Assembly (NCBI GenBank): GCA_964036045.1
Contig: OZ038378.1
Location: 162,316,001-162,380,000, forward strand
From: Eutreptiella sp. 'Long Island Sound 2002'
Lineage: Eukaryota > Protista > Euglenida
Length of the DNA stretch: 64,000 nt
Direction: 5' to 3'
The position numbers and the translations under genes are program-made. The notes below the pieces were generated by a model. That model ran no database searches. It saw only the letters and a program-made list of their open reading frames with translations, and was not told the origin of the DNA. Shown here in pieces: positions 5,204 through 34,234 of the stretch (the first letter of the stretch is position 1; each line of letters opens with the position of its first letter).

Positions 5204-5806
5204 GGTTACACTGTGATAGTATGGTACAGTTTTGTGGTGCAATTCCCCCCCCTCCCCTAAATCAGCTTGGCGCCTTGTAAAAATTTCCCTTGGCGCCTAG
5301 TATTTTCTAGTATTTGAGTTCGTGAGGGCACTGTGTGTCAAGGCGGCCCTGCGCCCTTGGAGCCCATGGGAGCACGACGTAGTGGCGCCCGGGAGGCACA
5401 AACGCAGTGGCAACGCCGTCACCCTTCTCGGGCAGCTGAGCACGAACGGGGCCTTCGTCACTCCCGTGACGACGACTGCGCGTCCACAACATCCGTTACC
5501 TCTGCAGGCCGGCCTCACTGCCCCTGCAAGAGCCCTCCTCCCGCACCAAAAGGGCCGGGATGCACTGAATCGCGCGGCACCGACAGACCCGGAGCTGCGT
5601 CACGCTGCCGCGCGGCCACAACGGGACACCAGCCCCCCCCCCCCCCCCACCCCCGTCCAAGCAACAGTAAATGACCAGAAAGTGACGGAACCAACGCCTC
5701 GTGTTGCTTTGGACAGGGCGTTGCTTCCGCGGTACACTGCGCATGGCACACGCCGAAAGCCATGACAAGACTATTCGGAAAACCGAGGGGCAAGATATGC
5801 CACACA

Positions 5807-5829
5807 CTTAGCCCACGCAAACTGCACCC
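5807..5829 (+). repeat. Left terminal inverted repeat (23 bp)
   Basis: Perfect inverted match to 12645-12667; preceded by TSD ACACA. Confidence 0.92.
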
Positions 5830-6593
5830 TGTTTTGCGCATCGAACGCGCAGAGAAGGACCGGTTCACGACAGGGCAAAAAAACTATTTTTTCGGATGTT
5901 TGATGAACGTGTTTTTGGGCGTAGTGAAATAAATTGCTTTTTTTAGCATTGCGCAACTCCGTGCTCCTAAATGGGACGTTTTTTATATTCTACGGTGATC
6001 TGAGTGCGCGAGGCCTCGCGCACTCAAGATATTCGAAGTAGAGTTAGCTACGAAACATAAAAACCCTAAGGACTGGCGTTTGTGGAAATACACAGCTCCC
6101 ACACGTTATTAAAACTCACGTTGTGTTGACGAAGGACCATTGAAAGTGTATGACGGTCAGACTTCCCATGTTCGGTGTACACATGTACTCTAAAGTAAAA
6201 ATAAAATACAAATTTAGGCATCCGGAGTGCGCGAGGCCTTGCGCACTCTGATCACGTGATGTAGTGGTTTGCGGGATGGATATGACGCGTACAATTGCAG
6301 GTACAGTACCAGACGGACAAACACATTTGATTTTTGCGGCGTATGTGTGTGTAGACACAGTGTTGGTCACGTATAACACGGCACAGAACATTGTCCAACC
6401 GAAACAATCAGTGCGCGAGGCCTCGCGCACTCAAACCACACAAGGAAATGAAAAAGCAGGCAGGTCAGGCTACGCCGGTATTTACATTCCCTTTCAAGGC
6501 TACCACTTGTGACTGTCGATTATACATCAGTAACCTTCGTCATATTCGTCAGGGGATCAGGGGAATGATTTGCTTTTTTCCAACAGGCACTCA

Positions 6594-8894
6594 ATGGCAG
6601 ACGTGTCCAGTTTTAATAGCGGCCGTAGCCTTCGCTGCCCGAAGGATAAGGGTTTTTTTTTCAACGGGGATTAAAGACGGAAACAGAACAGGAAATTGTG
6701 GTCGGGAAAACGGTTTTCGGTTACTGGGAACGGAGCGCACGCAGACACCAAATACAAATTGCGGCGGCAGCGTGCGCACCAGAAATGACGACAGGAAAAG
6801 GCCAGATATTTTCAAAAACGCTGTTTTTAAAGAACGCCGTGCGAAACGATAATGAAAATATGTGCGCAAATTCAATTTAACACAGAAAGACGCAAAATGC
6901 CACTTCGAGCCAGAAAATCCGTAACGCATCGAATGATTGCAGAAGTAAGCAAAGGAGCAGCAGCACTAAGAGAGGCATGCGCGGCAGAACCAGCATACCA
7001 AGCAGCAGATGACTGGTGGAACGGACTGAAACGGAACGACCTGGCGGCGCAACTGGAGTTAACATTTGCACAGCGACTCGGGTTCAGCAAAAGAACGCGA
7101 CACAGTTTACCCGCAGCTAAAAGGCAGGAGGACAAGCGCTGGGTGCGCATTTTGCGACAAGAGGGCTGGAACCTGTACCTGTTGATGCGTCAACGGGCAG
7201 TACCAAACTAGAAAAAACCGGGAAACACAACAGGGTACCTAACGCAAACAGAAAGACGAACAAAAGTACGACTTGGGCAAGCAGACGCCGCCGCAGATAC
7301 AGTGGACGAGCAGGCAGCAACAGCACTTAAAGCAACGTGGACACTGGTGCTCGCATCGTGTTGCGTGCTGTGGATGGACAACTGGTACCGGGCACAATAC
7401 ACGACACACCCAGACGAAAGTGACCGGTCGCAAAACTGTACTGCAATTGCAGTACTTCAACGGAAACAGAGGCCCACGTACTGGGCAGGACATCCAGCCA
7501 TTGAGGACCTGGCAGCACGGATAACGACAGTCGCACGGGCTCTGCAACAGCGTGAAAGGAGAATCCCCCAGACTCTGCGTGACATGGGTTATGCGGATGG
7601 TGGTGTACCAGATACCGGAAACGTGAGAGCACCGTTGGATGTGAGAAGGGATACAAGGACTGTGCAGGCACCGGTGTGGCGCCCGTTTGCCCTGTCAAAA
7701 GAAAAGGTAACCGGTGGTGTTGGTCTGTTAAACTTGTTGCAGTTTGCAAAGGACACAGCACAACAGACAAACAGGGTTCTACCGCTGTTGGTTGACGAAA
7801 ACATACACTACAGGATACTAAAGTTTTTGTATGGAGCGAAGAACCAACGATGGAACATGCGTGCCTACCTGTGATACGTACCTGTAGTTTACGGTGTTTG
7901 GCATGCCTACAAGTTTGTTGTTACACACACTTTTCGGGTGTTCTGGCCTATTCTAACTTACCTACGGAAAGGTCTGCTACGCCCTGGTTCAACCATACTA
8001 TCATACCCAAAACTGATAGTTATGGAAAAAACTATTGCTGCGCTGATGCTTGCCACACCCAGAATACTACGCCCGTATCGTCGCAAGGCACAAGCTGCAA
8101 CTGCAATCGGTGGTCGTGACACGGCGCATGCCAACAGGGTAGCAGTGGCAAACACAGTGTTGCATTTGTTGTCGGAATGGTGCCCATTGTTGTTGTACTT
8201 GGGTCACCTGGTACGGGAGTGCAACTGGGCGGGAGAAAATAACGGTACAGGGTCGCGGGCCCAGGAGGTGTTGCAGTTGAGTTTGTGTCGGTTGCGGAGG
8301 CTGCGTCGAGGACCGTGTGACACCGTACTGAAGTACGAACACACCATCATGTGCACATTGCTGTACAACAGCAAGTGGCACCAGGACCTGCCCGGTCAGG
8401 CACAGTCAGAGGAGTTTGGAGAAGGGATGTTGAGCAAGCTGGTGCGTGACAAGGCGAAAAACACCGGTTCTGTTACTGTTGAGGAGGTGGAAAACCATTA
8501 CCTGTTACTAAAAGTTGGTCCAGGCGGCAAACGCGTGGGTGTGCAAAACGTTCCCCAGAACCTGGTACACAGGATGCGACAACGACTGACAAGATTTTTG
8601 GCGACAGACCGGATTTGCATGGCCTACGTGGAATGGGAGCCCGACCGCGTCAGCACCGTTGCAACTTCGTGGCCGCGGAGGTTACCGAGATTTCCACCCT
8701 CACCAACGCAACCCCTTGGTTACGACCACTACCGGCTACTTGGTCACTGCATACTGGATGCCCTCATTGACCAAAAGACAAATCCCACCAACCAACTGAA
8801 ACGGAAATTGGATGCTGTTGTGGGGCGGAGAACAGATATGGATGCCGACAGACAGGAAGCAGCAACGCGCAACGTGCGGCAACGCATGCGGTAA
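6594..8894 (+). pseudogene. Putative DDE-type transposase (Academ/DUF6589-like), ~766 aa, no frameshift but five in-frame stops
   Basis: One frame from ATG 6594 (MADVSSFN) to TAA 8894 joins track ORFs 6852..7211, 7302..7874 and 7938..8894. Stops at 6672 TAA, 6786 TGA, 6828 TAA, 7209 TAG, 7872 TGA. Motifs VLWMDNW, LLVDENIHYRI, PVVYGVWHAYK and QSEEFGEGMLSKL fit a D..D..GxxH..E layout. The gene lies inside TIRs. Confidence 0.7.
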
Positions 8895-9483
8895 CTGACA
8901 CCCGGAGTGCGCGAGGCCTCGCACACTAAAGGATACGAGAAACAGGTCTGTAATGCGATGTGAGTGCGCGAGGCCTCGCGCACTGAGTAGGTCGCTAAGT
9001 CCGGTGGAATTGGTCGCAGCAAAGACGGTTGTGCAACAGATTTGCGAAAACGACCGGCAAAATGGCGTTTCGACTGGTTTCGGAGTCCAAATGACCGTGT
9101 TTTGTGTCATGCCATCTGCCCTTTTCAGGTATTTTTTGGCACCATGAGTCAACCAGGGTCGCCAGAATGTCCACCACAAGACGCAGAGGCGATGGAGTCA
9201 TCACCAGGGACCGACCAAGGGGACACGCCGAAGAAAGGACGCAAGAAGAAGGGGGATGAGAAGCCGATACCGGAGATGAAGCTCACAGTTGACGTTCAAC
9301 AGTGGCTGCGGAAGGAGAATGGAAAAGCAGTGAAGGTAAAGATTACTGATTTGAAGATTGACAAGACCAAGGAGCGGGGACAGATCCGACAGATCGACCA
9401 CGACGACGTTGCCAGAAAAGTGGTGGGATACCAAGCACTGCCGCCACCTGGACCGTTGCGCGTAACGGCATGGGAGGATAGTG

Positions 9484-9552
9484 GTATGACTCGCTTCGCA
9501 TTCGATCGACGACATTTCTTCTCTTTGCTGTGGTACATGATTTGCGTTGCAG
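9484..9552 (+). other. Intron 1 of cargo gene (69 nt, GTATGA...TTGCAG)
   Basis: Removal restores the compact ParB-like EDSDGSLYVLNGQH motif. Confidence 0.7.
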
Positions 9553-9914
9553 ATGGCTCGCTTTACGTTCTCAATGGTCAACATGGGACAGAAACATGCC
9601 GAAAGATTCAGGAAATGCGGCTCGCAGAAGGCAAAGAACTGGAGGACTGGCAAGAATATTGCTACGTTGACATTCTCAAGTACGAAACGCCTTGGAGGAT
9701 CCGGGCCAAGGTTGCAGGATTGTAGCAAGCTGGCAGCCAGTCTGTGACGTGGATTCCGCTATCCGAGGCGCTGGACAACATGTTGTTGTAAATTGAGGAC
9801 TAGAAGCGGGAAAAGGAACCACAGGATTTCGAACGGTTCAAAACTGCTGTTGTCCAGGCTGCCGTCAACTCTGCGTTTCTTGCACCCGAGTCGTTGGAGG
9901 AACCAGGGCACACA

Positions 9915-9987
9915 GTATGTGTTCGTGCGTCACACGGTCGCAGTGCGCGAGGCCTCGCGCCCTCCATGACACTGTTTTCCCTCGTAG
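9915..9987 (+). other. Intron 2 of cargo gene (73 nt, GTATGT...TCGTAG), contains a palindrome copy
   Basis: Phase-0 junction links the exon 2 frame to the 10060..10416 frame. Confidence 0.8.
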
Positions 9988-10291
9988 GACTCGACATTCA
10001 AGCACTGGAGGGACATCTTCTCCCTGGCATACTACTGCGGCCGTGACGCGGGGACTGGTGTGAAGAACCTCGAGAGTAAGAGCAAGAAAGAGGACGTTAC
10101 AAGGAATGCCTTCAAGAAGCCGGAGGGGCTGCATCTACCAAGTTTATTGCAGAAGGTCTGTGCGCATATGAACCTGAAGGAATCGACCATACATAGCACC
10201 CAGACCTACATTGACGCGTTGATTACGGAACAATGGGTTACGTTCCACCTTGACCATCCGGACAATAAGGATTTCGTCAACCAAACCGCAG

Positions 10292-10362
10292 GTATGCGTC
10301 GGTTTCGCAGCTTCAGTGCGCGAGGGCTCGCGCACTCAACCACCTTTTTCACATCTGCACAG
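10292..10362 (+). other. Intron 3 of cargo gene (71 nt, GTATGC...GCACAG), contains a palindrome copy
   Basis: Phase-1 junction links to the 10497..12101 frame (AADAKIRAEVAAL...KALTGAPLW). Confidence 0.8.
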
Positions 10363-11056
10363 CTGCCGATGCGAAGATCCGAGCAGAAGTCGCAGCTCTG
10401 GCCACAACGCAACTGAAGATTGGCCTGGGAAATTGGGGTTATTGGGAAGACGCAAAAAGTTCCAAGTACCGGTCGCCGTGGCCAAAGTGGAAAGCGTTGA
10501 CCGGTGCACCTCTGTGGCGGACTGGGGACAAGGGAGCACCTCCGTCACCGCAGACACTGGCCGTGCGGAAACAACTACAAAGGAAGGCTGAGGCACCAGC
10601 ATCGGCACCGACACAGACACAGTTGAGTACTGGCGACGTGATCAATGTCTCCAAGCAGGACGACCAAGGGAACAAGTGCACTTTGACAGCATGCCGCATT
10701 GAGGATATCGAAGAGACACCACCAGCCCATTTCCGGGACTTGCAGTACCCGTTGTGGGTCGTCAACACTGACCTTTTCGTGGAATATGACTCTGCAGGAT
10801 TTGTTCTGAAGTGGTTGTTCGATGTGATGATGTTGGGGAAGGACGTCATTTTCTATGGCGATGCTGATGTTGTGCACCGTATTGGCCGCGACATGCAGAG
10901 GCTGTGGCGTATGGAGAAGGACAAGGATCCAACTACAGCGCCTTTCTATCATGCCCGGTTGCCGGTATACTCTTGTCGGGTTCCGTTACAAGCAACATGT
11001 ATCAGTTCGACGAGCACTGTATGTGGATCGGAACAACGAGTCGCTGGGATAAGCAG

Positions 11057-11153
11057 GTATATCTGCTTCTTTCACCGGTTTCTATGCCGTTGTGTGCGCG
11101 AGGCCTCGCGCATTGCTGTCTCCATTATTCGTCTTTATTCATCGCATTTGCAG
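11057..11153 (+). other. Intron 4 of cargo gene (97 nt, GTATAT...TTGCAG), contains a palindrome copy
   Basis: GTAT donor as in the other three introns, pyrimidine-rich acceptor. Joins ...WIGTTSRWDKQ|LPNYVTY if a 1-nt frameshift near 10965 is assumed. Confidence 0.6.
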
Positions 11154-12644
11154 TTGCCGAACTATGTGACGTATTCCGCTGGACATTTCGAAGAGATGCA
11201 GAACAAGAACCTCGGTGGTTTCATGCCTCTGATTCACGTGCTTTGGTACCTTGACAAGTATCTGTTGGACTGTGGGCATGCTGATGCAGTGGTTGTTGTG
11301 GATGACACGCCTGCCATGGCCGCAAAGATTGCGATGTCGGACGAGTCGGGGAGGACTAAAGTGGCGTTTCTGGGTGTGTCGGCGATCAAGCAAAAAGACC
11401 TTGCGAATGCCGTTGGACGTGCTCTGCAGCATGCCATCATCATGCGGTACATGTTGGAAGCCGATCAGACGGAGCAGGGAGTGACAGCTGCAACTTGGGA
11501 TACTCAAGAAGAGTGGCTTTTGCGTGGCATTCCACTGTGGGTTTTGGACAGCAACCGAGGGTACGAAGGGCACCAGAAGGTGCATGCTGCAGAAGCCGTC
11601 CAAGAACAGATCGTGACTGAGGCCCCCGCTGACGACAGTGAGCATGTTGCGCCTGCACCTACCTTGCCAAGCCAAGCCAAGGTGAAGAAGACTGCCAAAG
11701 TTGTACCTACTCGGGGTACTGCGGCCGGAAAAGGAACCCCCTCGAGTAGCAAGAAGCAGGCGAAAGGAAAGGAGAAGGAATCGGACAAGCCCGGAGAATC
11801 AGACGACGACGATGCCGACGAGGAGTCAGAAGAAGAGGATCCGGCGCAAGTGCTGGAGACCCAGCAGAAGCGCAAGCGGGCGCCCGCCTCTCACTTCGAT
11901 GCGAGTCCCGATGATTCGGGTAAGGACCAGCCAAAGAAGAAAGCAAAGACTGCTGCGACTGCTAGTGCAGAGTTCAAGCTGCCCTCGCGTTCTGGTGCTC
12001 AGTCATCCCGTGGTACCGTTGCCTCCCCAAGTGGGACAAGTACGGTGGCAAGAAGCCTGGGTTCCAGGTTGGCTAAGGTTGCAGGACCGAAGAAGAAGTA
12101 AGTCACGATTAACCCTTGTGTTTTTGTCTCTTTTTGCAGTCATGTGTGCGCGAGGCCTCGCGCACTCGCCTTCGACGCGAATGCAATTATATGCCCTCCA
12201 CGGCTTGTGCATTTTTGCCGAGCTTTTATTTCAGTGCTTGTATGTTGTGCATTTCGTGTCCTGTTTTTGTTGTCTTCCGTACACAATTGTTTCCGCGACC
12301 TTGAGTGCGCGAGGCCTCGCGCACTCAGGGACATAAAAAAGCAATTTATTTTGCAGGACAAACTTAGGTACAACTGGAGACCCACAGAATGTCATTTTTG
12401 AAAATGAGCTCCTGAAAAGGCACGTGCTAGTGGGATTTTGAAATACAAAAACAACAACATTGGTAAAACACACCCTTCAAATCAAACAAAATAATAGTTT
12501 ATTTTGGTAAACAAAAACTTAAAAAAAGCAGCAAATTGCGTAAAAACCTATTTTTTTTGTGGTGTCTGATTCATGCGTGCTGCAAATGTCCAAAAAGAAT
12601 AGTTTTTCCGGCTGCTGTTTTTTGCGTCCGCCTCTTCCAAAAGG

Positions 12645-12667
12645 GGGTGCAGTTTGCGTGGGCTAAG
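12645..12667 (-). repeat. Right terminal inverted repeat (23 bp)
   Basis: Perfect inverted match to 5807-5829; followed by TSD ACACA. Confidence 0.92.
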
Positions 12668-12972
12668 ACACAGGCCGCCATGCCCCAAGCAGCTTCCTTG
12701 ATACAAAACATCACGCATCTCAAACCCTAGGTATCGGACAGCACACGTGGCACACGGGAGGACCAATTGCAAAATGCACTGCCAAAAGCCACGGTGCGAA
12801 AAACGACGGAACCAACGCCCGGTGTTGCTTGGCCATAGATCGACGATGGGCGTCACCCTCCGGAATCCCTCTGGCATTCCAACAGTACTTCATGCATCAC
12901 GCGACACACAAAGTGCACATAGTCCAGCAAGGCGCCGTGAGGTGTTGCTTGGCGTCACCCTCCGGAATCACT

Positions 12973-13575
12973 CCTGGAACTCTCACAGTGCATTGTCATG
13001 AATACGACGCCGGAGGCACCGCCACGGATTTGGGGGAGTATGCGCACCGCGTCAGGTATTTGAACAACTTCTCCAGGAGATGGTCTACCGGGAGAGGAGT
13101 TGTAGATGGTAATTGGTGGGCTCTGAGGCGTTACCATTCCCCCTGATTGGCTCTGGATGAAAGGGTCTCCGGAACAACCCCAGCACCCGCACCGCGGCAG
13201 GTACTCCCTCATTGTCCACAGATTGTCCGTAGGCGCCGGAGAGAGTGAGGTGTTGCTTGTCCGGGGGGGGGGGGGGGGGGGGCGTACCCACCTCCGCCCG
13301 GGGGGGGGGGGGGGGGGCACCCCTCGGTTCTGGACGCCAACTAGCCCCCCACCTAACTGTTGGCCGGAGGCCCCCTCTAATCAGGGGGAATGGTAACGCG
13401 TCAGAGCCCACCAGGTACCATCTACAACTCCTCTCCCAGTAGACCATCTCCTGGAGAAGTTGTTCAAATACCTGACGCGGTGCGGGCGCGGTGCACCCGC
13501 GGTGCGGATACTCCCCCAATCCGTGGCGGCGCCTCCGGCATCGTTTTCATGACAATGCACTGTGAGAGCTCCAGG
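12973..13575. repeat. Foldback / MITE-like element: imperfect ~175-205-bp inverted arms around a ~230-bp poly-G-containing spacer
   Basis: ~12973-13148 is an inverted copy of ~13379-13575, with mismatches and one ~20-bp indel. No clear TSD. Confidence 0.75.
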
Positions 13576-14871: not shown

Positions 14872-17800
14872 CGGCCAAAAATAATAAAATGCAGCCGCCT
14901 GAACAAGGCCAAAACAGCCGAAAATAAGAAAATTGCGGCCGCCTGAACGTGGCCAAAACGGCCGAAAATAATAAAAATGCAGCCGTCTGAACATGGGCAA
15001 AACGGCCGAAAATAATAAAAATGCAGCCGTCTGAACCTGGCCAAAACCGCCGAAAAGAATAATATTTTTGGCCGTTTTGGCGATGTTCAGGCGGCTGCAT
15101 TTTTATTATTCTCAGCCGTTTTGGCCATGTTCAGACGGCTGCATTCTTATTAATGTCGGCCGTTTTGGCCACGTTCAGGCGGCCGCAATTTTCTTATTTC
15201 TGACTGTTTTGGCCATGTTCAGGCGGCTGCATTTTTATTATTTTCGGCCGTTTTGGTCATGTTCAGATGGCTGCATTTTTATATTACTTTAGTCCATTTT
15301 GGGCATGTTCAGGCGGCTGCATTTAATTTTTTTTTGGCCAATTCGGCCATGTTCAGGCGGCTGAATTTTTATTATTTTCGGCCGTTTGGCTTACGTTCAG
15401 ACGAGTGCTTTTTTTTTTTTCCAGTAATTTCAGCCGTTTTGGCTCATGTTCAGGCGGCTGCATTTTTATCATTTTGGGCCATTTTGGCCACGCTTAGGCG
15501 GCTGCATTTGTATCATTTTGGGCAATTTGGGGCATGTTCAGCTGGCTGCATTTTTAGTACTTTCGGCTGTTTCGGCCATGTTTAGGCGGCTGCATCTATA
15601 TCATTCTCGGCCGTTTTGGCCATGTTCAGACGACTGCAGTTTTATTATTTTCGGCCGTTTTGGCGATGTTTAGGCGGCTACATTTATAGTATTTTTGGCC
15701 GTTTTGGCCATGTCCAGGCAGCCGCATTTCATTATATTCGGCCGTTTTGGCCCAGTTCAGGCAGCCGCATTTCTATTGTTTTTGGGCGTTTTGGCCATAC
15801 TCAGGCGGGTGAATTTTTATCATTGTCGGCCGTTTTGGCCATGCTTAGGCGGCTGCATTTTTAGTATTATTTTCGGCCATGTCGGCCTTGTTCAAACGGC
15901 TGCCTTTTTTTATTTTCAGTTGTTTTGGGCATGTTCAGGCTGCTGCATTTTTATTATTTACGGCTGTTTTGGCAATGTTCATCCGTATTTTTAGTATTTT
16001 CGGCCGTTTTACCCGTCTTCAGACGGCTTGATTTGTATTATGTTCGGGCGTTTTGGCCATATTCAGACGGCTGCATTTTCATTCTTTCCAGCCGTTTTGG
16101 GCATGTTCAGGCGGCTGCATTTTTATTACTAGGCGTTTTGGCCATGTTTAGCCGGCTACATTTTTATTTTTTTTCGCCGTTTTGACCATGTTCAGGCGGC
16201 TGCATTTATATTATTTTCGGCCGTTGGGCTCATGTTCCGGCGACTGTATTTCTATTAGTTTGGACCGTTTTGACCACGTTCAGGCGGCCGCATTTTTATC
16301 ATTTCCGTCCGTTTTGGCCATGTTTAGGCAGCTGCATCTATATCATTTTCGGCCGTTGTGGCCATTTTGAGGCGGTTGGATTTTAATTGTTTTCCGCCGT
16401 TTTGGCCATGTTCACGCGGTTGCATTTTACTATTTTCGGCCGTTTTGGCCATCTTCAGGCGGGTGCATTTTTATCATTTTCGGCCATTTTGGCTATGTTC
16501 AGACGACTGCATTTTTATTATTTTCAGCCGTTTTGTACACGTTCAAGCGGCTGCATTTTTTATTTTTTCTGGCCGTTTTGGCCATGTTCAGGCGGCCGCA
16601 TTTCATTATATTCGGCCGTTTTGGCCATACTCAGGCAGCCGCATTTCTATTGTTTTTGGGCGTTTTGGCCATACTCAGGCGGGTGAAGTTTTATCATTGT
16701 CGGCCGTTTTGGCCATGTTTAGGCGGCTGCATTTGTAGTATTATTTTCGGCCATGTCGGCCTTGTTCAAACGGCTGCCTTTTTTTATTTTCAGCTGTTTT
16801 GGGCATGTTCAGGCTGCTGCATTTTTATTATTTTAGGCTGTTTTGGCAATGTTCATTTGTATTTCTAGTATTTTCGGTCGTTTTACCTGTCTTCGGACGG
16901 CTGCATTTTTATGATTTCTAGACGTTTTGGCCATGTTGAGACGGCTTGATTTGTATTATGTTCGGGCGTTTTGGCCATGTTCAGCCGGCTGCATTTTCAT
17001 TCTTTCCAGCCGTTTTGGGCATGTTCAGGCGGCCGCATTTTTATTATTTCTAGGCGTTTTGGGCATGTTCAGCCGGCTGCATTTTTATTATTTTCGCCGT
17101 TTTGACCATGTTCAGGCGGCTGCATTTATATTATTTTCGGCCGTTGGGCTCATGTTCGGGCGACTGCAATTTTATCAGTTTGGACCGTTTTGACCACGTT
17201 CAGGCGGCCGCATTTTTATCATTTCCGTCCGTTTTGGCCATGCTCAGGTGGCTGCATTTTCATTATTTCTAGACGTTTTGGCCATGTTCAAACGGCGCTA
17301 TTTTAATTACTTTCGGCCGTTTTGCCCATGTTAAGATGGCTGCATTTTTATTATTTCTAGACGTTTTGGCCATGTTTAGACGGTTGCATTTTTATTATTG
17401 TCGCTCATTTTGGCCATGTCCAGGCGGCTGCATGTATATTTTTTTCGGCTGCTTGGCTCCTGTTTAGGCGGCCGCATTTTCATTCTTTCCGGCCGTTTTG
17501 GGCATGTTCAGGCGGTTGCATTTTTATCATTTTCGGCCGTTTTGGCTATGTTCAGACGACTGCATTTTTATTATTTTCAGCCGTTTTGTACACGTTCAAG
17601 CGGCTGCATTTTTTATTTTTTCTGGCCGTTTTGGCCATGTTCAGGCGGCCGCATTTCTATTCTTTTCGGGCGTTTTGGCCATACTCAGGCGGCTGAATTT
17701 TTATCATTGTCGGCCGTTTTGGCCATGTTTAGGCGGATGCATTTGATAAAAATGTAGCCGTCTAAACATGGTAAAAACGGCCGAGAATAATGTAGATGCA

Positions 17801-20800
17801 GCCGCCTGAATGCGGCCAAAACGGCCCAAAATAATAAAAATGCAACTGCCTGAACATGAGCCAAACGGCCGAAAATAATATAAACGCAGCCGCATGAATA
17901 TGGCCAAAATTGGCGAAAATAATAAAGATGAAGCCGTCTAAATATGGGCAAAACGGCCGAAAATAATAAAAATGCAGCCCTCTGAACATGGCCAAACCAT
18001 CTAGAAACGATAAAAATGCAGCCGCGTGAACATGGCCAAACCGTCTAGAAACGATAAAAATGCAGCCGCCTGAACATGGCCAAAACACCCGAAAATAATC
18101 TAAACGCAGCCGCCTGAAGATGGCCAAACCGCCCGAAAAAAATAAAAATGCAGCCGCCCGAAGATGGGTAAAACGGCCAGAAATAATAAAAATGGAGCAG
18201 CCAAAACAACTGAAAATAAAAAAAAGGCAGCCGTCTGAACAAGGACGAAACATGTTCACGTGGCTGCATTTTACTATTTTCGGCCGTTTTGGCCATTATC
18301 AGGCGGTTGCCTTTTGATCATCTTCGGCCGTTTTGGCTATGTTCAATTGACTGCGGTTTTATTATTTTCATCCGTTTTGTACACGTTTCTGGCCGTTTTG
18401 GCCCAGTTTAGGCAGCCGCATTTCTCTTTTGTTCGGGTGTTTTGGCCATGTTTAGGCGGCTGCATTTGTAGTATTATTTTCGGCCGTCTCGTCCTTGTTC
18501 AGACGGCTGCCTTTTTTTTATTTTCAGCTGTTTTGGGCATGCTCAGGCTGCTCCATTTTTATTATTTCTGGCCGTTTTACCCATCTTCGGGCGGCTGCAT
18601 TTTATTTTTTTTGGCCGTTTTGGCCAAGTTTAGGCAGCTGCATTTTTATTTTTTTCGGGCGGTTTGGCCATCTTCAGGCGGCTGCGTTTGGACTATTTTC
18701 GGGTGTTTTGGCCATGTTCAGGCGGCTGCAGTTTTATCGTTTCTAGACGGTTTGGCCATGTTCAGACGGCTTCATCTTTATTATTTTCGCCAATTTTGGC
18801 CATGTTCATGTGGCTGCGTTTATATTATTTTCGGCCGTTTGGCTCATGTTCAGGCAGTTGCATTTGTATTATTTTGGGCCGTTTTGGCCACATTCAGGCG
18901 GCTGCATCTACATTATTCTCGGCCGTTTTTACCATGTTTAGACGGCTACTTTTTTATGATTTTTTGCCGTTTTGGCCATGTTCACGTGGTTGCATTTTAC
19001 TATTTTCGGCTGTTTTGGCCATTATCAGGCGGTTGCCTTTTGACCATCTTCGGCCGTTTTGGCTATGTTCAAATGACTGCGGTTTTATTATTTTCATCCG
19101 TTTTGTACACGTTTCTGGCCGTTTTGGCCCAGTTCAGGCAGCCGCATTTCTCTTTTGTTCGGGTGGTTTGGTCATAATGAGGCGGCTGCATTTAGATGAT
19201 TGTCGGGTGTTTTGGCCATGCTCAGGTGGCTGCATTTTCATTATTTCTAGACGTTTTGGCCATGTTCAAACGGCGCTATTTTAATTACTTTCGGCCGTTT
19301 TGCCCATGTTAAGACGGCTGCATTTTTATTATTTCTAGATGTTTTGCCCATGTTTAGACGGTTGCATTTTTATTATTTTCGCTCATTTTGGCCATGTCCA
19401 GGCGGCTGCATGTATATCATTTTCGGCTGTTTGGCTCCTGTTTAGGCGGCCGCATTTTCATTCTTTCCGGCCGTTTTGGGCATGTTGAGGCGGTTGCATT
19501 TTTATTTTTTCTAGACATTTTGGCCATGTTCACGCCCGTGCATTTAGGTTATTTTTAGACGTTTTGGCCGCAGTTTTATTGTTTTCGGGTGTTTTGGCCA
19601 TGTTCAGGCGGCTGCATTTTTATCGTTTCTAGATGGTTTGGCCATGTTCAGAGGGTTGCATTTTTATTATTTTCGGCCGTTTTACCCATATTTAGACGGC
19701 TTCATTTTTATTATTTTCGCCAATTTTGGCCATGTTCATGCGGCTGCGTTTATAACATTTTCGGCCGTTTGGCTCATGTTCAGGCAGTTGCATTTTTATT
19801 ATTTTGGGCCGTTTTGGCCACATTCAGGCGGCTGCATCTACATTATTCTCGGCCGTTTTTACCATGTTTAGACGGCTACATTTTCATGATTTTCCGCCGT
19901 TTTGGCCATGTTCACGTGGTTGCATTTTACTATTTCCGGCCGTTTTGGCCATTATCAGGCGGTTGCCTTTTGATCATCTTCGGCCGTTTTGGCTATGTTC
20001 AAATGACTGCGGTTTATTATTTTCATCCGTTTTGTACACGTTTCTGGCCGTTTTGGCCCGGTTTAGGCAGCCGCATTTCTCTTTTGTTCGGGTGTTTTGG
20101 TCATACTCAGGCGGCTGAATTTTTATCGTTGTGGGCTGTTTTGTCCATGTTTAGGCGGCTGCATTTAGATGATTGTCGGGTGTTTTGGCCATGCTCAGGT
20201 GGCTGCATTTTCATTATTTCTAGACGTTTTGGCCATGTTCAAACGGCGCTATTTTAATTACTTTCGGCCGTTTTGCCCATGTTAAGACGGCTGCATTTTT
20301 ATTATTTCTAGACGTTTTGGCCATGTTTAGACGGTTGCATTTTTATTATTGTCGCTCATTTTGGCCATGTCCAGGCGGCTGCATGTATATTTTTTTCGGC
20401 TGCTTGGCTCCTGTTTAGGCGGCCGCATTTTCATTCTTTCCGGCCGTTTTGGGCATGTTCAGGCGGTTGCATTTTTATCATTTTCGGCCGTTTTGGCTAT
20501 GTTCAGACGACTGCATTTTTATTATTTTCAGCCGTTTTGTACACGTTCAAGCGGCTGCATTTTTTATTTTTTCTGGCCGTTTTGGCCATGTTCAGGCGGC
20601 CGCATTTCTATTCTTTTCGGGCGTTTTGGCCATACTCAGGCGGCTGAATTTTTATCATTGTCGGCCGTTTTGGCCATGTTTAGGCGGATGCATTTGATAA
20701 AAATGTAGCCGTCTAAACATGGTAAAAACGGCCGAGAATAATGTAGATGCAGCCGCCTGAATGTGGCCAAAACGGCCCAAAATAATAAAAATGCAACTGC

Positions 20801-23800
20801 CTGAACATGAGCCAAACGGCCGAAAATAATATAAACGCAGCCGCATGAATATGGCCAAAATTGGCGAAAATAATAAAGATGAAGCCGTCTAAATATGGGC
20901 AAAACGGCCGAAAATAATAAAAATGCAGCCCTCTGAACATGGCCAAACCATCTAGAAACGATAAAAATGCAGCCGCGTGAACATGGCCAAACCGTCTAGA
21001 AACGATAAAAATGCAGCCGCCTGAACATGGCCAAAACACCCGAAAATAATCTAAACGCAGCCGCCTGAGGATGGCCAAACCGCCCGAAAAAAATAAAAAT
21101 GCAGCCGCCCGAAGATGGGTAAAACGGCCAGAAATAATAAAAATGGAGCAGCCAAAACAGCTGAAAATAAAAAAAAGGCAGCCGTCTGAACAAGGACGAA
21201 ACATGTTCACGTGGCTGCATTTTACTATTTTCGGCCGTTTTGGCCATTATCAGGCGGTTGCCTTTTGATCATCTTCGGCCGTTTTGGCTATGTTCAATTG
21301 ACTGCGGTTTTATTATTTTCATCCGTTTTGTACACGTTTCTGGCCGTTTTGGCCCAGTTTAGGCAGCCGCATTTCTCTTTTGTTCGGGTGTTTTGGCCAT
21401 GTTTAGGCGGCTGCATTTGTAGTATTATTTTCGGCCGTCTCGTCCTTGTTCAGACGGCTGCCTTTTTTTTATTTTCAGCTGTTTTGGGCATGCTCAGGCT
21501 GCTCCATTTTTATTATTTCTGGCCGTTTTGCCCATCTTCGGGCGGCTGCATTTTATTTTTTTTGGCCGTTTTGGCCAAGTTTAGGCAGCTGCATTTTTAT
21601 TTTTTTCGGGCGGTTTGGCCATCTTCAGGCGGCTGCGTTTGGACTATTTTCGGGTGTTTTGGCCATGTTCAGGCGGCTGCAGTTTTATCGTTTCTAGACG
21701 GTTTGGCCATGTTCAGACGGCTTCATCTTTATTATTTTCGCCAATTTTGGCCATGTTCATGTGGCTGCGTTTATATTATTTTCGGCCGTTTGGCTCATGT
21801 TCAGGCAGTTGCATTTGTATTATTTTGGGCCGTTTTGGCCACATTCAGGCGGCTGCATCTACATTATTCTCGGCCGTTTTTACCATGTTTAGACGGCTAC
21901 TTTTTTATGATTTTTTGCCGTTTTGGCCATGTTCACGTGGTTGCATTTTACTATTTTCGGCTGTTTTGGCCATTATCAGGCGGTTGCCTTTTGACCATCT
22001 TCGGCCGTTTTGGCTATGTTCAAATGACTGCGGTTTTATTATTTTCATCCGTTTTGTACACGTTTCTGGCCGTTTTGGCCCAGTTCAGGCAGCCGCATTT
22101 CTCTTTTGTTCGGGTGGTTTGGTCATAATGAGGCGGCTGCATTTAGATGATTGTCGGGTGTTTTGGCCATGCTCAGGTGGCTGCATTTTCATTATTTCTA
22201 GACGTTTTGGCCATGTTCAAACGGCGCTATTTTAATTACTTTCGGCCGTTTTGCCCATGTTAAGACGGCTGCATTTTTATTATTTCTAGATGTTTTGCCC
22301 ATGTTTAGACGGTTGCATTTTTATTATTTTCGCTCATTTTGGCCATGTCCAGGCGGCTGCATGTATATCATTTTCGGCTGTTTGGCTCCTGTTTAGGCGG
22401 CCGCATTTTCATTCTTTCCGGCCGTTTTGGGCATGTTGAGGCGGTTGCATTTTTATTTTTTCTAGACATTTTGGCCATGTTCACGCCCGTGCATTTAGGT
22501 TATTTTTAGACGTTTTGGCCGCAGTTTTATTGTTTTCGGGTGTTTTGGCCATGTTCAGGCGGCTGCATTTTAATCGTTTCTAGATGGTTTGGCCATGTTC
22601 AGAGGGTTGCATTTTTATTATTTTCGGCCGTTTTACCCATATTTAGACGGCTTCATTTTTATTATTTTCGCCAATTTTGGCCATGTTCATGCGGCTGCGT
22701 TTATAACATTTTCGGCCGTTTGGCTCATGTTCAGGCAGTTGCATTTTTATTATTTTGGGCCGTTTTGGCCACATTCAGGCGGCTGCATCTACATTATTCT
22801 CGGCCGTTTTTACCATGTTTAGACGGCTACATTTTCATGATTTTCCGCCGTTTTGGCCATGTTCACGTGGTTGCATTTTACTATTTCCGGCCGTTTTGGC
22901 CATTATCAGGCGGTTGCCTTTTGATCATCTTCGGCCGTTTTGGCTATGTTCAAATGACTGCGGTTTATTATTTTCATCCGTTTTGTACACGTTTCTGGCC
23001 GTTTTGGCCCGGTTTAGGCAGCCGCATTTCTCTTTTGTTCGGGTGTTTTGGTCATACTCAGGCGGCTGAATTTTTATCGTTGTGGGCTGTTTTGTCCATG
23101 TTTAGGCGGCTGCATTTAGATGATTGTCGGGTGTTTTGGCCATGCTCAGGTGGCTGCATTTTCATTATTTCTAGACGTTTTGGCCATGTTCAAACGGCGC
23201 TATTTTAATTACTTTCGGCCGTTTTGCCCATGTTAAGACGGCTGCATTTTTATTATTTCTAGACGTTTTGGCCATGTTTAGACGGTTGCATTTTTATTAT
23301 TGTCGCTCATTTTGGCCATGTCCAGGCGGCTGCATGTATATTTTTTTCGGCTGCTTGGCTCCTGTTTAGGCGGCCGCATTTTCATTCTTTCCGGCCGTTT
23401 TGGGCATGTTCAGGCGGTTGCATTTTTATCATTTTCGGCCGTTTTGGCTATGTTCAGACGACTGCATTTTTATTATTTTCAGCCGTTTTGTACACGTTCA
23501 AGCGGCTGCATTTTTTATTTTTTCTGGCCGTTTTGGCCATGTTCAGGCGGCCGCATTTCTATTCTTTTCGGGCGTTTTGGCCATACTCAGGCGGCTGAAT
23601 TTTTATCATTGTCGGCCGTTTTGGCCATGTTTAGGCGGATGCATTTGATAAAAATGTAGCCGTCTAAACATGGTAAAAACGGCCGAGAATAATGTAGATG
23701 CAGCCGCCTGAATGTGGCCAAAACGGCCCAAAATAATAAAAATGCAACTGCCTGAACATGAGCCAAACGGCCGAAAATAATATAAACGCAGCCGCATGAA

Positions 23801-26800
23801 TATGGCCAAAATTGGCGAAAATAATAAAGATGAAGCCGTCTAAATATGGGCAAAACGGCCGAAAATAATAAAAATGCAGCCCTCTGAACATGGCCAAACC
23901 ATCTAGAAACGATAAAAATGCAGCCGCGTGAACATGGCCAAACCGTCTAGAAACGATAAAAATGCAGCCGCCTGAACATGGCCAAAACACCCGAAAATAA
24001 TCTAAACGCAGCCGCCTGAAGATGGCCAAACCGCCCGAAAAAAATAAAAATGCAGCCGCCCGAAGATGGGTAAAACGGCCAGAAATAATAAAAATGGAGC
24101 AGCCAAAACAGCTGAAAATAAAAAAAAGGCAGCCGTCTGAACAAGGACGAAACATGTTCACGTGGCTGCATTTTACTATTTTCGGCCGTTTTGGCCATTA
24201 TCAGGCGGTTGCCTTTTGATCATCTTCGGCCGTTTTGGCTATGTTCAATTGACTGCGGTTTTATTATTTTCATCCGTTTTGTACACGTTTCTGGCCGTTT
24301 TGGCCCAGTTTAGGCAGCCGCATTTCTCTTTTGTTCGGGTGTTTTGGCCATGTTTAGGCGGCTGCATTTGTAGTATTATTTTCGGCCGTCTCGTCCTTGT
24401 TCAGACGGCTGCCTTTTTTTTATTTTCAGCTGTTTTGGGCATGCTCAGGCTGCTCCATTTTTATTATTTCTGGCCGTTTTGCCCATCTTCGGGCGGCTGC
24501 ATTTTATTTTTTTTGGCCGTTTTGGCCAAGTTTAGGCAGCTGCATTTTTATTTTTTTCGGGCGGTTTGGCCATCTTCAGGCGGCTGCGTTTGGACTATTT
24601 TCGGGTGTTTTGGCCATGTTCAGGCGGCTGCAGTTTTATCGTTTCTAGACGGTTTGGCCATGTTCAGACGGCTTCATCTTTATTATTTTCGCCAATTTTG
24701 GCCATGTTCATGTGGCTGCGTTTATATTATTTTCGGCCGTTTGGCTCATGTTCAGGCAGTTGCATTTGTATTATTTTGGGCCGTTTTGGCCACATTCAGG
24801 CGGCTGCATCTACATTATTCTCGGCCGTTTTTACCATGTTTAGACAGCTACTTTTTTATGATTTTTCGCCGTTTTGGCCATGTTCACGTGGTTGCATTTT
24901 ACTATTTTCGGCTGTTTTGGCCATTATCAGGCGGTTGCCTTTTGACCATCTTCGGCCGTTTTGGCTATGTTCAAATGACTGCGGTTTTATTATTTTCATC
25001 CGTTTTGTACACGTTTCTGGCCGTTTTGGCCCAGTTCAGGCAGCCGCATTTCTCTTTTGTTCGGGTGGTTTGGTCATAATGAGGCGGCTGCATTTAGATG
25101 ATTGTCGGGTGTTTTGGCCATGCTCAGGTGGCTGCATTTTCATTATTTCTAGACGTTTTGGCCATGTTCAAACGGCGCTATTTTAATTACTTTCGGCCGT
25201 TTTGCCCATGTTAAGACGGCTGCATTTTTATTATTTCTAGATGTTTTGCCCATGTTTAGACGGTTGCATTTTTATTATTTTCGCTCATTTTGGCCATGTC
25301 CAGGCGGCTGCATGTATATCATTTTCGGCTGTTTGGCTCCTGTTTAGGCGGCCGCATTTTCATTCTTTCCGGCCGTTTTGGGCATGTTCAGGCGGTTGCA
25401 TTTTTATTTTTTCTAGACATTTTGGCCATGTTCACGCCCGTGCATTTAGGTTATTTTTAGACGTTTTGGCCGCAGTTTTATTGTTTTCGGGTGTTTTGGC
25501 CATGTTCAGGCGGCTGCATTTTTATCGTTTCTAGATGGTTTGGCCATGTTCAGAGGGTTGCATTTTTATTATTTTCGGCCGTTTTACCCATATTTAGACG
25601 GCTTCATTTTTATTATTTTCGCCAATTTTGGCCATGTTCATGCGGCTGCGTTTATAACATTTTCGGCCGTTTGGCTCATGTTCAGGCAGTTGCATTTTTA
25701 TTATTTTGGGCCGTTTTGGCCACATTCAGGCGGCTGCATCTACATTATTCTCGGCCGTTTTTACCATGTTTAGACGGCTACATTTTCATGATTTTCCGCC
25801 GTTTTGGCCATGTTCACGTGGTTGCATTTTACTATTTCCGGCCGTTTTGGCCATTATCAGGCGGTTGCCTTTTGATCATCTTCGGCCGTTTTGGCTATGT
25901 TCAAATGACTGCGGTTTATTATTTTCATCCGTTTTGTACACGTTTCTGGCCGTTTTGGCCCGGTTTAGGCAGCCGCATTTCTCTTTTGTTCGGGTGTTTT
26001 GGTCATACTCGGGCGGCTGAATTTTTATCGTTGTGGGCTGTTTTGTCCATGTTTAGGCGGCTGCATTTAGATGATTGTCGGGTGTTTTGGCCATGCTCAG
26101 GTGGCTGCATTTTCATTATTTCTAGACGTTTTGGCCATGTTCAAACGGCGCTATTTTAATTACTTTCGGCCGTTTTGCCCATGTTAAGACGGCTGCATTT
26201 TTATTATTTCTAGACGTTTTGGCCATGTTTAGACGGTTGCATTTTTATTATTGTCGCTCATTTTGGCCATGTCCAGGCGGCTGCATGTATATTTTTTTCG
26301 GCCGCTTGGCTCCTGTTTAGGCGGCCGCATTTTCATTCTTTCCGGCCGTTTTGGGCATGTTCAGGCGGTTGCATTTTTATCATTTTCGGCCGTTTTGGCT
26401 ATGTTCAGACGACTGCATTTTTATTATTTTCAGCCGTTTTGTACACGTTCAAGCGGCTGCATTTTTTATTTTTTCTGGCCGTTTTGGCCATGTTCAGGCG
26501 GCCGCATTTCTATTCTTTTCGGGCGTTTTGGCCATACTCAGGCGGCTGAATTTTTATCATTGTCGGCCGTTTTGGCCATGTTTAGGCGGATGCATTTGAT
26601 AAAAATGTAGCCGTCTAAACATGGTAAAAACGGCCGAGAATAATGTAGATGCAGCCGCCTGAATGTGGCCAAAACGGCCCAAAATAATAAAAATGCAACT
26701 GCCTGAACATGAGCCAAACGGCCGAAAATAATATAAACGCAGCCGCATGAATATGGCCAAAATTGGCGAAAATAATAAAGATGAAGCCGTCTAAATATGG

Positions 26801-29800
26801 GCAAAACGGCCGAAAAATAATAAAAATGCAGCCCTCTGAACATGGCCAAACCATCTAGAAACGATAAAAATGCAGCCACGTGAACATGGCCAAACCGTCT
26901 AGAAACGATAAAAATGCAGCCGCCTGAACATGGCCAAAACACCCGAAAATAATCTAAACGCAGCCGCCTGAAGATGGCCAAACCGCCCGAAAAAAATAAA
27001 AATGCAGCCGCCCGAAGATGGGTAAAACGGCCAGAAATAATAAAAATGGAGCAGCCAAAACAGCTGAAAATAAAAAAAAGGCAGCCGTCTGAACAAGGAC
27101 GAAACATGTTCACGTGGCTGCATTTTACTATTTTCGGCCGTTTTGGCCATTATCAGGCGGTTGCCTTTTGACCATCTTCGGCCGTTTTGGCTATGTTCAA
27201 ATGACTGCGGTTTTATTATTTTCATCCGTTTTGTACACGTTTCTGGCCGTTTTGGCCCAGTTCAGGCAGCCGCATTTCTCTTTTGTTCGGGTGGTTTGGT
27301 CATAATGAGGCGGCTGCATTTAGATGATTGTCGGGTGTTTTGGCCATGCTCAGGTGGCTGCATTTTCATTATTTCTAGACGTTTTGGCCATGTTCAAACG
27401 GCGCTATTTTAATTACTTTCGGCCGTTTTGCCCATGTTAAGACGGCTGCATTTTTATTATTTCTAGATGTTTTGCCCATGTTTAGACGGTTGCATTTTTA
27501 TTATTTTCGCTCATTTTGGCCATGTCCAGGCGGCTGCATGTATATCATTTTCGGCTGTTTGGCTCCTGTTTAGGCGGCCGCATTTTCATTCTTTCCGGCC
27601 GTTTTGGGCATGTTCAGGCGGTTGCATTTTTATTTTTTCTAGACATTTTGGCCATGTTCACGCCCGTGCATTTAGGTTATTTTTAGACGTTTTGGCCGCA
27701 GTTTTATTGTTTTCGGGTGTTTTGGCCATGTTTAGGCGGCTGCATTTTTATCGTTTCTAGATGGTTTGGCCATGTTCAGAGGGTTGCATTTTTATTATTT
27801 TCGGCCGTTTTACCCATATTTAGACGGCTTCATTTTTATTATTTTCGCCAATTTTGGCCATGTTCATGCGGCTGCGTTTATAACATTTTCGGCCGTTTGG
27901 CTCATGTTCAGGCAGTTGCATTTGTATTATTTTGGGCCGTTTTGGCCACATTCAGGCGGCTGCATCTACATTATTCTCGGCCGTTTTTACCATGTTTAGA
28001 CGGCTACATTTTCATGATTTTCCGCCGTTTTGGCCATGTTCACGTGGTTGCATTTTACTATTTCCGGCCGTTTTGGCCATTATCAGGCGGTTGCCTTTTG
28101 ATCATCTTCGGCCGTTTTGGCTATGTTCAAATGACTGCGGTTTATTATTTTCATCCGTTTTGTACACGTTTCTGGCCGTTTTGGCCCGGTTTAGGCAGCC
28201 GCATTTCTCTTTTGTTCGGGTGTTTTGGTCATACTCAGGCGGCTGAATTTTTATCGTTGTGGGCTGTTTTGTCCATGTTTAGGCGGCTGCATTTAGATGA
28301 TTGTCGGGTGTTTTGGCCATGCTCAGGTGGCTGCATTTTCATTATTTCTAGACGTTTTGGCCATGTTCAAACGGCGCTATTTTAATTACTTTCGGCCGTT
28401 TTGCCCATGTTAAGACGGCTGCATTTTTATTATTTCTAGACGTTTTGGCCATGTTTAGACGGTTGCATTTTTATTATTGTCGCTCATTTTGGCCATGTCC
28501 AGGCGGCTGCATGTATATTTTTTTCGGCCGCTTGGCTCCTGTTTAGGCGGCCGCATTTTCATTCTTTCCGGCCGTTTTGGGCATGTTCAGGCGGTTGCAT
28601 TTTTATTTTTTCTAGACATTTTGGCCATGTTCACGCGCGTGCATTTAGATTATTTTCGGTAATTTTGGCCATGTTTAGGTGGCTTCATTTGTATTATTTC
28701 TAGACGTTTTGGCCATGTTCAGTCGGCCGCAGTTTTATTGTTTTCAGGTGTTTTGGCCATGTTCAAGCGGGTGCATTTTCATTCTTTCCGCGCGTTTTGG
28801 GCACGTTCAGGCGGCTGCTTTTGTATTATTTCGAGACGTTTTGGCCAAGTTCAGGCGGCCGCATTTAGATTATTTTCGGCAATTTTGGCCATGTTCACGC
28901 GGCTGCATTTTTATCATTTCTAGACGTTTTGGCCATGTTCACACGGTTGCATTTTTAATATTTTGGGCCGTTTTGCCATGTTCCGAAGGTTGCATTTTTA
29001 TCATTTTCGGCAACTTTGGCCATGATCAGGCGGATGGCATTTCATTCTTTCCGGCCGTTTTGGGCATGTTCAGGCGGGTGCATTTTTTTTTTGTATTTCT
29101 AGACTTGTTGGCCATGTTCAGACGGCTACATTCTTATTATTTTCGACAATTTTGGGCATGTTCAGGCGGCTACATTTTTATTATTTCTAGACGTTTTGGC
29201 CATGTTCAAGCGGCTGCATTTTTATTTTTGTCGACAATTTTGGGCATGTTCAGGCGGCTGCATCTGTATTATTTTCGCCCGTTTTGGCCATGTTCAGGCG
29301 GCTGCATCTATATTATTTTCGGCCGTTGGGCTCATGTTCAGGCGACGGCAATTTTTTTTTTTGGACCGTTTTGACCACGTTCAGGCGGCCGCATTTTTAT
29401 CATTTCCGGCCGTCTTGGCCATGTTTAGGTAGCTGCATCTATATTATTTTCGGCTGTTTTGGCCATGTTCCGACAGCTACCTTTTTACTATTTTCGGCCG
29501 TTGTGGCCATTTTCAGGCGGTTGAATTTTAATTGTTTTCCGCCGTTTTGGCCATGTTCACGCGGTTGCATCTTATTATTTTCGGCCGTTTTGGCCATCTT
29601 CAGGCGGGTGCATTTTTATCATTTTCGGCCGTTTTGGCTATGTTCAGACGATTCCATTTTTATTATTTTCAGCCGTTTTGTACACATTCAAGCGGCTGCA
29701 TTTTCTTTTTTTTTTTGGCCCTTTTGGCCATGTTTAGGCGGCCGCATTTCATTATATTCGGCAGTTTGGGCCCAGTTCAGGCGGCCGCATTTATATATTT

Positions 29801-32800: not shown

Positions 32801-33258
32801 GCCGTTTTGGCCATGTTCAGGCGGCTGCATTGAGATTATTTTTGGTCATTCCGGCCATGTTGAGGCGGCCGCATTTTTAGTATTTCAAACCGTTTCAACC
32901 ATGTTCAAGCGGCTGCATTTTCATTATTTCTGACCATTTTGGCCATGTTTAGGCGGCTGCATCTTAATCACTTTCGTCCATTTTGGCCATGTTCAACCGG
33001 CTGCATATTTAATATTTTTGGCCGCTTTGGCCATGTTCAGACGGCTGCATTTTTATCATTTTCGGCTGTTTTGGCCATGTTCAGACGGAGGCATTTTAAT
33101 TATTTTCGGCCGTTTTAACCATGTTCCGCCGGCTTTATTTTCAGCATTTTTGGCCGTTTTGGCCATGTTCAGGCGGCTGCATTTCGCTATTTTCGGCCAT
33201 TTTGGCCATGTTCACGTGGTTGCATTTTTACTATTTTTGGATGTTTTGGCCACGTTTA
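14872..33258 (+). repeat. ~18.4-kb satellite of a ~44-bp monomer (consensus GGCCGTTTTGGCCATGTTCAGGCGGCTGCATTTTTATTATTTTC)
   Basis: Continuous degenerate tandem monomers. The left tip (14872-~15058) is inverted, and a ~190-bp unrelated island sits at ~32300-32490. Confidence 0.95.
17234..28640 (+). repeat. Near-identical 2951-bp higher-order repeat (3 full units, one 2226-bp deleted unit, one partial unit), each unit with a ~500-bp inverted block
   Basis: The same landmark recurs at 17234, 20185, 23136, 26087 (+2951 each) and 28313 (+2226). Inversion starts at 17745, 20696, 23647 and 26598. Confidence 0.92.
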
Positions 33259-34234
33259 GACAGATAGTAAGTGATGGCTGGGCTGTCTGCTAGACTTAGG
33301 AAGCGTGGTGATGGTGTGTAATTGACTGTACTGGGTCGATGTGGGGGTCAGGGTGCCATAGGTGTAGAGACTGCAAAACCGCTTGCACGCGAATCAGGAG
33401 CACAACGAGCAGGTGCGAGGTGAACAGGAATGGAGGGTGCAGAAGACTCACTTACAGATGAGTGTGACTCACAGTCGGAAATAAATGGCGGTTCGGAGCG
33501 TGGCGGGGGCCAGCGCCCCTTTGTGGTGCCAAAGAGCGGCGTAGGCTTCGCGCCTGTGGGGCCACCGATTGTTTGAGTATCATGACATCTGTGACACCTT
33601 ACCTCTCATTACCGTGCCTCCTGTCGCCCGGAGGCTTCAGTTCAGGGCTCTAACACCCTCACTGGCTGTGTCACAGCACGACATTGGTTTTTCTCATTGC
33701 CCTTCCCTACCATAGCATCACAACCATACACCTTTACCTTCATGTCCCTGCACGGCACAGTTCTGGTCATACGCTGCAGTCCCACATGCCTTAGGTTCAA
33801 TCAGCTGGCAACAACCTGCGTGTCGCACCCTGCAGCCTCCCGCACCGGGAGACCACGGTCCAGACATCCTCTTCCATCTAGATCCTCAGCAAGACTTAAG
33901 GCATAGAGATGGCCCGGCTCCGGCAGTGTCTGCACGGGCATGAACCGTTGGGAAAATTTCGCCTGGGAAACTGTAAATACCTATCGATCAGGCGCGATCA
34001 GGCACAATCAGGCGCCGAAATAAAAATACTCAAACAAACACCAAACCCTCCTGGCGTTAGCGATGGCACCCCCGGCCACCGCCGCTGCTCACAGCAGGGT
34101 CCACGCCTGGAGCCGCAGGACGTAGGTGCCCCTCCTCCTGGGCCGCAAACTATTCTTCATACTGACGGATATGTATACATACACTGTCACGGCAGAAATG
34201 AAAACTTACACAGGGCCCGCTGCTTCTCCCGCCC

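Follow-up and report, generated by a model that had tools for sequence, protein, structure and literature searches.

DNA transposons are grouped into few superfamilies (about 20–25), and V(D)J recombination, like several domesticated genes, derives from their DDE recombinases. The target site duplication (TSD) measures 7–8 bp in P and hAT elements and is TTAA in Kolobok. Academ elements combine either a TSD of 3–4 bp with an XPG nuclease (AcademX) or one of 9–10 bp with a helicase (AcademH) (PMC10045372). Transib elements have CACAATG ends, GC-rich targets and a RAG1-like enzyme, and in their description of 2005 a 5-bp duplication was the hallmark of this superfamily alone (PMC1131882). ParB-like accessory genes beside arrays of inverted repeats were reported for Plavaka/EnSpm in Bostrychia, Mutator in Chondrus and Sola1 in Ectocarpus (bioRxiv 10.1101/2025.02.11.637652; PMC12477816). 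Here, an element with two genes and terminal inverted repeats (TIRs) from the euglenid Eutreptiella sp. 'Long Island Sound 2002' is compared with these systems. It occupies positions 5807-12667 of a stretch of 64,000 nucleotides (assembly GCA_964036045.1, contig OZ038378.1, positions 162,316,001 to 162,380,000 of the forward strand), which is called the window throughout and to which all coordinates refer. With a probability of roughly 0.75, it is a full-length, coding-dead copy of a very high-copy euglenid cut-and-paste transposon that represents a distinct DDE lineage, possibly at the superfamily level. An earlier reading of the same DNA without database searches (the sequence-only reading) had held that the combination of TIRs, TSD and cargo fits no recognised family, and it fitted none of the superfamilies tested in this study.

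Terminal inverted repeats and target site duplication

The element and its borders comprise the following features:

5802-5806, left copy of the TSD, ACACA, based on flank comparison and the single 5-mer at empty paralogous sites
5807-12667, whole element with two genes on the + strand
5807-5836, + strand, left TIR, CTTAGCCCACGCAAACTGCACCC and 7 further bases, nearly invariant over 67 genomic ends
12638-12667, - strand, right TIR
12668-12672, right copy of the TSD, ACACA
5500-5806 and 12673-12860, host repeat flanking the element

Perfect 23-bp TIRs starting with CTTAG had been proposed in the sequence-only reading and were recovered in full. The core CTTAGCCCACGCAAACTGCACCC at 5807-5829 matched the reverse complement of 12645-12667 at 23 of 23 bp and begins with CTTAGCC. 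Over a longer span, 28 of 30 bp matched (two mismatches; 0 matches expected by chance), with the left end unlike the right end at positions 24-25. The first 23 bases were almost invariant across 67 distinct genomic ends (loci L001-L078).

The element is inserted into an older host repeat, for which the genome gave more than 1,000 first-look candidates, about 82% identical to one another. Three unoccupied paralogues of this repeat read '...ATATGCC ACAAA GGCC...' with one 5-mer only, and the filled site in the window reads ATATGCC ACACA before the element and ACACA GGCC after it. The single 5-mer at the empty paralogous sites therefore fixes both the termini of the element and a duplication of 5 bp. 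This length was also the sole fit in eight coordinate-paired genomic copies, of which six agreed at 5/5 bases and two at 4/5. The ACACA duplication described earlier was thus borne out on both flanks, at the three empty sites and in the paired copies. Collecting copies by their TIRs, which had been suggested as a check, yielded 5-bp TSDs and internally deleted copies; the empty sites came from paralogues of the host repeat.

The edges of the TSD are A/T-rich, with A/T at position 1 in 79% and at position 5 in 82% of the 67 ends; the genome as a whole has a GC content above 50%. The bases immediately outside the TSD are C-rich, so that the target takes the form CC-WNNNW-GG when both strands are combined over the same 67 ends.

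Transposase gene and its family

The first gene of the element encodes the transposase:

6897-8894, + strand, transposase coding sequence of 665 codons, colinear with intact copies at 92% amino acid identity
7209-7211, + strand, premature stop TAG at codon 105
7872-7874, + strand, premature stop TGA at codon 326
7377, codon of D161, kept
7638, codon of D248, kept
7794, codon of D300, kept
7899, codons of W335-H336, kept
8409-8423, codons of E505, E506 and E509, kept

Two details of the sequence-only reading had to be corrected here. The transposase frame had been given as 6594-8894; its portion before 6897 is non-coding, given that the open frame in intact copies extends over 672 codons only. 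The element had also been called intact. In addition to the stops at codons 105 and 326 of the transposase, exon 1 of the second gene is interrupted at 9723, 9789 and 9801, and the window copy is full-length yet coding-dead. It belongs to a different subfamily from the intact sister copy that was used as reference (L071:460-2454, 665 codons), with 90% DNA identity between the subfamilies. Directional CpG decay was considered as a source of the premature stops and ruled out, since the window copy and the intact copy differ by substitutions that are symmetric in direction.

Across 40 family members with 20-45% identity, the residues D161, R244, P246, D248, R251, W261, D300, W335, H336, E377, E505, E506 and E509 were invariant. 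D161 is found in the context W-x-D-N, D300 in VDENIHYR, W335-H336 in GVWHAYK and E505-E506-x-x-E509 in EEFGE. The motifs DN, VDEN, GVWH and EEFGE, which had already been picked out by eye in the single copy, are hence real and invariant or nearly so among the relatives. The likewise invariant loop R244-x-P246-x-D248-x-x-R251 (RxPxDxxR) is situated between strands 2 and 3 of the predicted structure. The first and the second Asp (D161 and D300) are 139 residues apart, and this spacing together with the loop is a feature peculiar to this transposase family.

When 1.84 billion cluster representatives (clusters at 50% identity) were searched with a profile, 1,721 relatives were found at E ≤ 0.001, of which 437 reached E ≤ 1e-30. 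The transposase and 39 diverse relatives matched no Pfam model, including those of DUF6589, P-element, THAP, hAT-dimerisation, MULE, KDZ, Plavaka and Sola. NCBIfam gave no match to the family either, and a PDB sequence search with the transposase and its relatives found no match to any chain, those of RAG and Transib included. Given 1,721 clusters of relatives and the absence from Pfam and NCBIfam, the family is large and unnamed. The literature search returned nothing on euglenid transposons of this kind. On the grounds of sequence, the family occurs outside this genome as well: a metagenome contig of 3,139 bp (Ga0129333_10075129, L082), too short to include the ends, encodes a transposase with 36% identity over residues 13-665.

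Predicted fold of the transposase

The structure was modelled with AlphaFold from the intact sister copy and not from the stop-broken frame of the window. The model reached a predicted local distance difference test score (pLDDT) of 65 and a predicted template modelling score (pTM) of 0.59. Its topology of strand-strand-strand-helix-strand corresponds to the order in RNase H, with D161 on strand 1 and D300 just after strand 4. E505/E506 were placed on a helix that follows a long, all-helical insertion domain. According to this model, the transposase is an RNase H-type DDE enzyme of the insertion-domain class with D161, D300 and E505/E506 as predicted catalytic residues.

In Foldseek, the P element transposase was the top match (E 4e-3, probability 1.0), followed by Hermes. 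When structures were compared exhaustively, the scores were as follows:

P element transposase, Z 12.2, 291 residues aligned
Hermes, Z 8.0
Tn5, Z 7.5
Retroviral integrases, Z 6-7.6
RAG1, Z 6.1
Transib, Z 5.5

A check for an RNase H fold had been proposed in the sequence-only reading, and the model, Foldseek and the structural comparison all point to this fold. With its two genes on the + strand and a transposase predicted to be of the RNase H type, the element also agrees with the claim of a two-gene TIR DNA transposon. It has the features of class II subclass 1, namely TIRs at both ends, a TSD of fixed length with single-copy empty sites and, as modelled, an RNase H-fold transposase with a conserved acidic triad.

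Second gene and palindromes

Gene 2, which is a conserved gene, and the copies of a 20-bp palindrome are arranged as follows:

9144-12101, + strand, gene 2 with several exons, no family or PDB sequence match
from 9144, + strand, exon 1 of gene 2, with the three stops given above
10497-12101, + strand, last long open frame of gene 2, ending in a Lys/Asp/Glu-rich tail
6004, 6227 and 6411 (span 6004-6430), palindrome GTGCGCGAGGCCTCGCGCAC in the 5' non-coding part
8907 and 8964 (span 8907-8983), palindrome between the genes
9943, 10316 and 11094, palindrome in likely introns of gene 2
12146 and 12305 (span 12146-12324), palindrome in the 3' non-coding part

The palindrome GTGCGCGAGGCCTCGCGCAC has ten copies in the window (0 expected by chance). 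All ten are located inside the element, in non-coding or likely intronic DNA. The copy at 11094-11113 sits within a stretch of the frame 10497-12101 that is open. This stretch is probably an intron that is open by chance in the window copy, because some sister copies lack the matching part (residues ~161-294) in the protein match.

The exons of gene 2 were searched one by one as separate pieces, and none of these pieces had a match in Pfam, NCBIfam or PDB. An AF2 model of exon 1, built from 18 close paralogues, had a pLDDT of 33. Weak hints came from the neighbours in the ESM Atlas, with DUF3723 in seven of them and ParB_N first at rank 24. The product of gene 2 probably binds the palindromes. 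A cargo of a ParB-like gene and palindromes has already been reported in algal superfamilies and is therefore not new as a type. A sigma-70 promoter scan of the window was disregarded as not relevant for eukaryotic DNA.

Copies in the genome

In the assembly of 2.28 Gb, first-look candidates numbered more than 700 for each end of the element and more than 5,000 for the transposase piece. The majority of 125 scored transposase matches were open across 672 codons with identical scores, which is a sign of a very recent burst. The family is young in this genome, where it numbers thousands of copies, many with open genes. For this reason, it is probably still active in the euglenid genome and would then be a major driver of genome size. 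Internally deleted copies are present as well, an example being a 4.8-kb copy on C6 that shares 99% identity with the window copy at the right end.

A second lineage in the same genome (P0036) has a transposase with 45% identity and is equally abundant, again with open genes. A fragment of a third transposase lineage (L021:2771-3193, - strand) is 65% identical to the C-terminus of P0036 and adjoins an element copy. A word search with the 40-sequence profile found only the close copies already known. As to the genome itself, 24 bases of the Euglena spliced leader had 3,309 exact matches compared to 0 for the control, which identifies the host as a euglenid.

Surroundings of the element

The element is enclosed by a pair of poly-C/poly-G inverted tracts (5635-5666 and 13251-13282), and just downstream of it lies a 106-nt inverted repeat with 96% complementarity (13043-13148 and 13379-13484). 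Both may mark where the host repeat, or another element, ends. Farther downstream, a 44-bp satellite array extends over ~18 kb (14872-33261) with a higher-order period of ~2.95 kb and inverted blocks of ~457 bp at 17746, 20697, 23648 and 26599. A tRNA match at 42900-42971 scored 30 bits compared to the Rfam gathering score of 29.

Discussion

The sequence-only reading had called the transposase Academ-like, and this label has one lead in its favour. In the ESM Atlas, 29 of the 30 clusters nearest to the transposase carry DUF6589, with a score of 0.94 and 196 of 256 shared features. If DUF6589 is the transposase domain of Academ, the element could be a divergent Academ lineage in which the nuclease or helicase partner was swapped for another accessory gene and the TSD length changed. 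The TSD length does vary with the partner enzyme within Academ (PMC10045372), and the taxa of the DUF6589 clusters, which are Basidiomycota, Mucoromycota and animals, resemble those of AcademH (PMC10799480). However, the recognition value of 1912 in the Atlas lies under the level at which a high score is strong evidence. The hidden Markov model of DUF6589 (PF20231) was matched neither by the protein of the window family at E ≤ 10 nor by 39 relatives at E ≤ 1; it was also silent in the whole-genome search, in which the control was silent too, so that this last result is weak evidence. The literature search revealed no source that equates DUF6589 with Academ and no paper explaining what DUF6589 is. 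Moreover, the TSD is 5 bp long instead of 3-4 or 9-10 bp, and no XPG or helicase Pfam domain was detected in either gene or in 40 members of the transposase family. A place within Academ is thus considered unlikely, with the nearness to DUF6589 left as the lone lead.

The TSD length by itself would rather suggest a Transib or RAG1-like transposon, since this is the classical superfamily with 5 bp, and RAG1 and Transib structures were among the fold matches. Their Z-scores of 6.1 and 5.5 are no better than those of generic integrases, though, and far under the 12.2 of the P element transposase, and no RAG or Transib chain matched in sequence. The ends also differ, with CTTAG here and the CACAATG heptamer with a nonamer there, as do the targets, which have A/T edges here and are GC-rich in Transib (PMC1131882). 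For Academ (TSDs of 3-4 or 9-10 bp) and for Transib (5-bp TSDs and CAC ends), the signatures named in the sequence-only reading agree with the cited work. By its ends, its target composition and the fold ranking, a Transib identity is largely refuted and has only a minute probability. The structural matches point in another direction, to P and hAT, superfamilies that share the insertion-domain fold with Kolobok. The P element transposase and Hermes were the top hits with alignments that cross the insertion domain, and a His-containing motif after the second Asp (DENIH, then WH at 335-336) is like that of this group. Yet none of 40 members matched the Pfam models of P-element, THAP, hAT-dimerisation or other transposases, the TSD of 5 bp differs from the 7–8 bp of P and hAT and from the TTAA of Kolobok, and the Asp-Asp spacing of 139 residues with the invariant R-x-P-x-D-x-x-R loop is unlike these families. 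Very divergent membership in one of them is improbable, more so than an Academ origin.

As the family is absent from Pfam and NCBIfam and misses the defining features of the Academ, Transib, P, hAT and KDZ/Plavaka models tested, it is best treated as a distinct DDE lineage. Several points weigh against this assignment. The quality of the structural model is moderate, and the glutamate-bearing helix has low confidence. The TSD and the termini were measured in one lineage of the element. The ESM-Atlas neighbours carry DUF6589 almost throughout, so the family could be a distant branch of the superfamily to which DUF6589 belongs. Finally, novelty was judged against Pfam, NCBIfam and PDB, and the family may already carry a name in Repbase or Dfam.

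The rank of a new eukaryotic DDE superfamily is a more tentative proposal, to which we would give slightly less than even odds. Such a superfamily would be characterised by a P/hAT-like fold, the long Asp-Asp spacing, the RxPxDxxR loop, CTTAG ends, a 5-bp W-N3-W TSD and an accessory gene that is obligatory and comes with lineage-specific palindromes; it would be widespread in uncultured eukaryotes (1,721 clusters) and absent from Pfam and the searched papers. In Repbase, a superfamily is defined by a lack of PSI-BLAST convergence with another superfamily at a criterion of E < 0.005 (PMC4455052). To this picture, the window copy adds the proof from empty sites, the profile of the target site and the fold ranking with the P element in first place.

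The distinct DDE lineage would transpose by cut-and-paste. A multimer of the transposase would bind both CTTAG ends, excise the element and join it to target phosphates with a 5-bp stagger; gap repair would then create the 5-bp duplication. Since the window copy makes neither protein but keeps perfect ends, intact sister copies could mobilise it in trans. If the proposed rank is true, this would be the second superfamily with a 5-bp TSD after Transib, and the occurrence of this stagger in a family unrelated to Transib would mean that it arose more than once. Each new superfamily is an extra branch in the history of DDE recombinases. In practical terms, the transposon is a candidate gene-transfer tool for euglenids.

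Compared with the known systems, the element shares with AcademX and AcademH the pairing of a large DDE transposase with a second protein or enzyme, and a remote link through DUF6589 is possible as a lead only. It differs from them in the TSD, which is 3-4 or 9-10 bp there and 5 bp here, and in having no XPG nuclease or helicase (PMC10045372). With Transib, it has the 5-bp TSD and a DDE transposase of ~650-700 amino acids in common; Transib is set apart by its CACAATG-type ends and GC-rich targets (PMC1131882), and the fold match of the transposase to RAG1 and Transib is weak. The P element transposase of Drosophila (PDB 6p5a, 6pe2) has the same RNase H-like core, with a helical domain inserted after the second Asp and before the Glu, and both elements are of the cut-and-paste type with short TIRs. 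However, the sequences are ~9-10% identical and gave no HMM match, a THAP domain was not detected in the euglenid protein, the TSD is 5 instead of 8 bp and the termini are different. Hermes, as representative of hAT (PDB 8edg, 2bw3, 4d1q), was the second-best fold match (Z 8.0) and resembles the transposase in its all-helical insertion domain and the conserved W/H after the second Asp, whereas the 40 members gave no match to the hAT dimerisation domain (PF05699), the TSD is again 5 instead of 8 bp and hAT-type termini are absent. The algal transposons with ParB-like accessory genes belong to other transposase superfamilies, as no Plavaka, KDZ, MULE or Sola match was obtained here. What they have in common with the euglenid element is an accessory gene next to inverted repeats or palindromes, represented here by gene 2 and the ten 20-bp palindromes, and the association of such a ParB-like cargo with this transposase family would be new.

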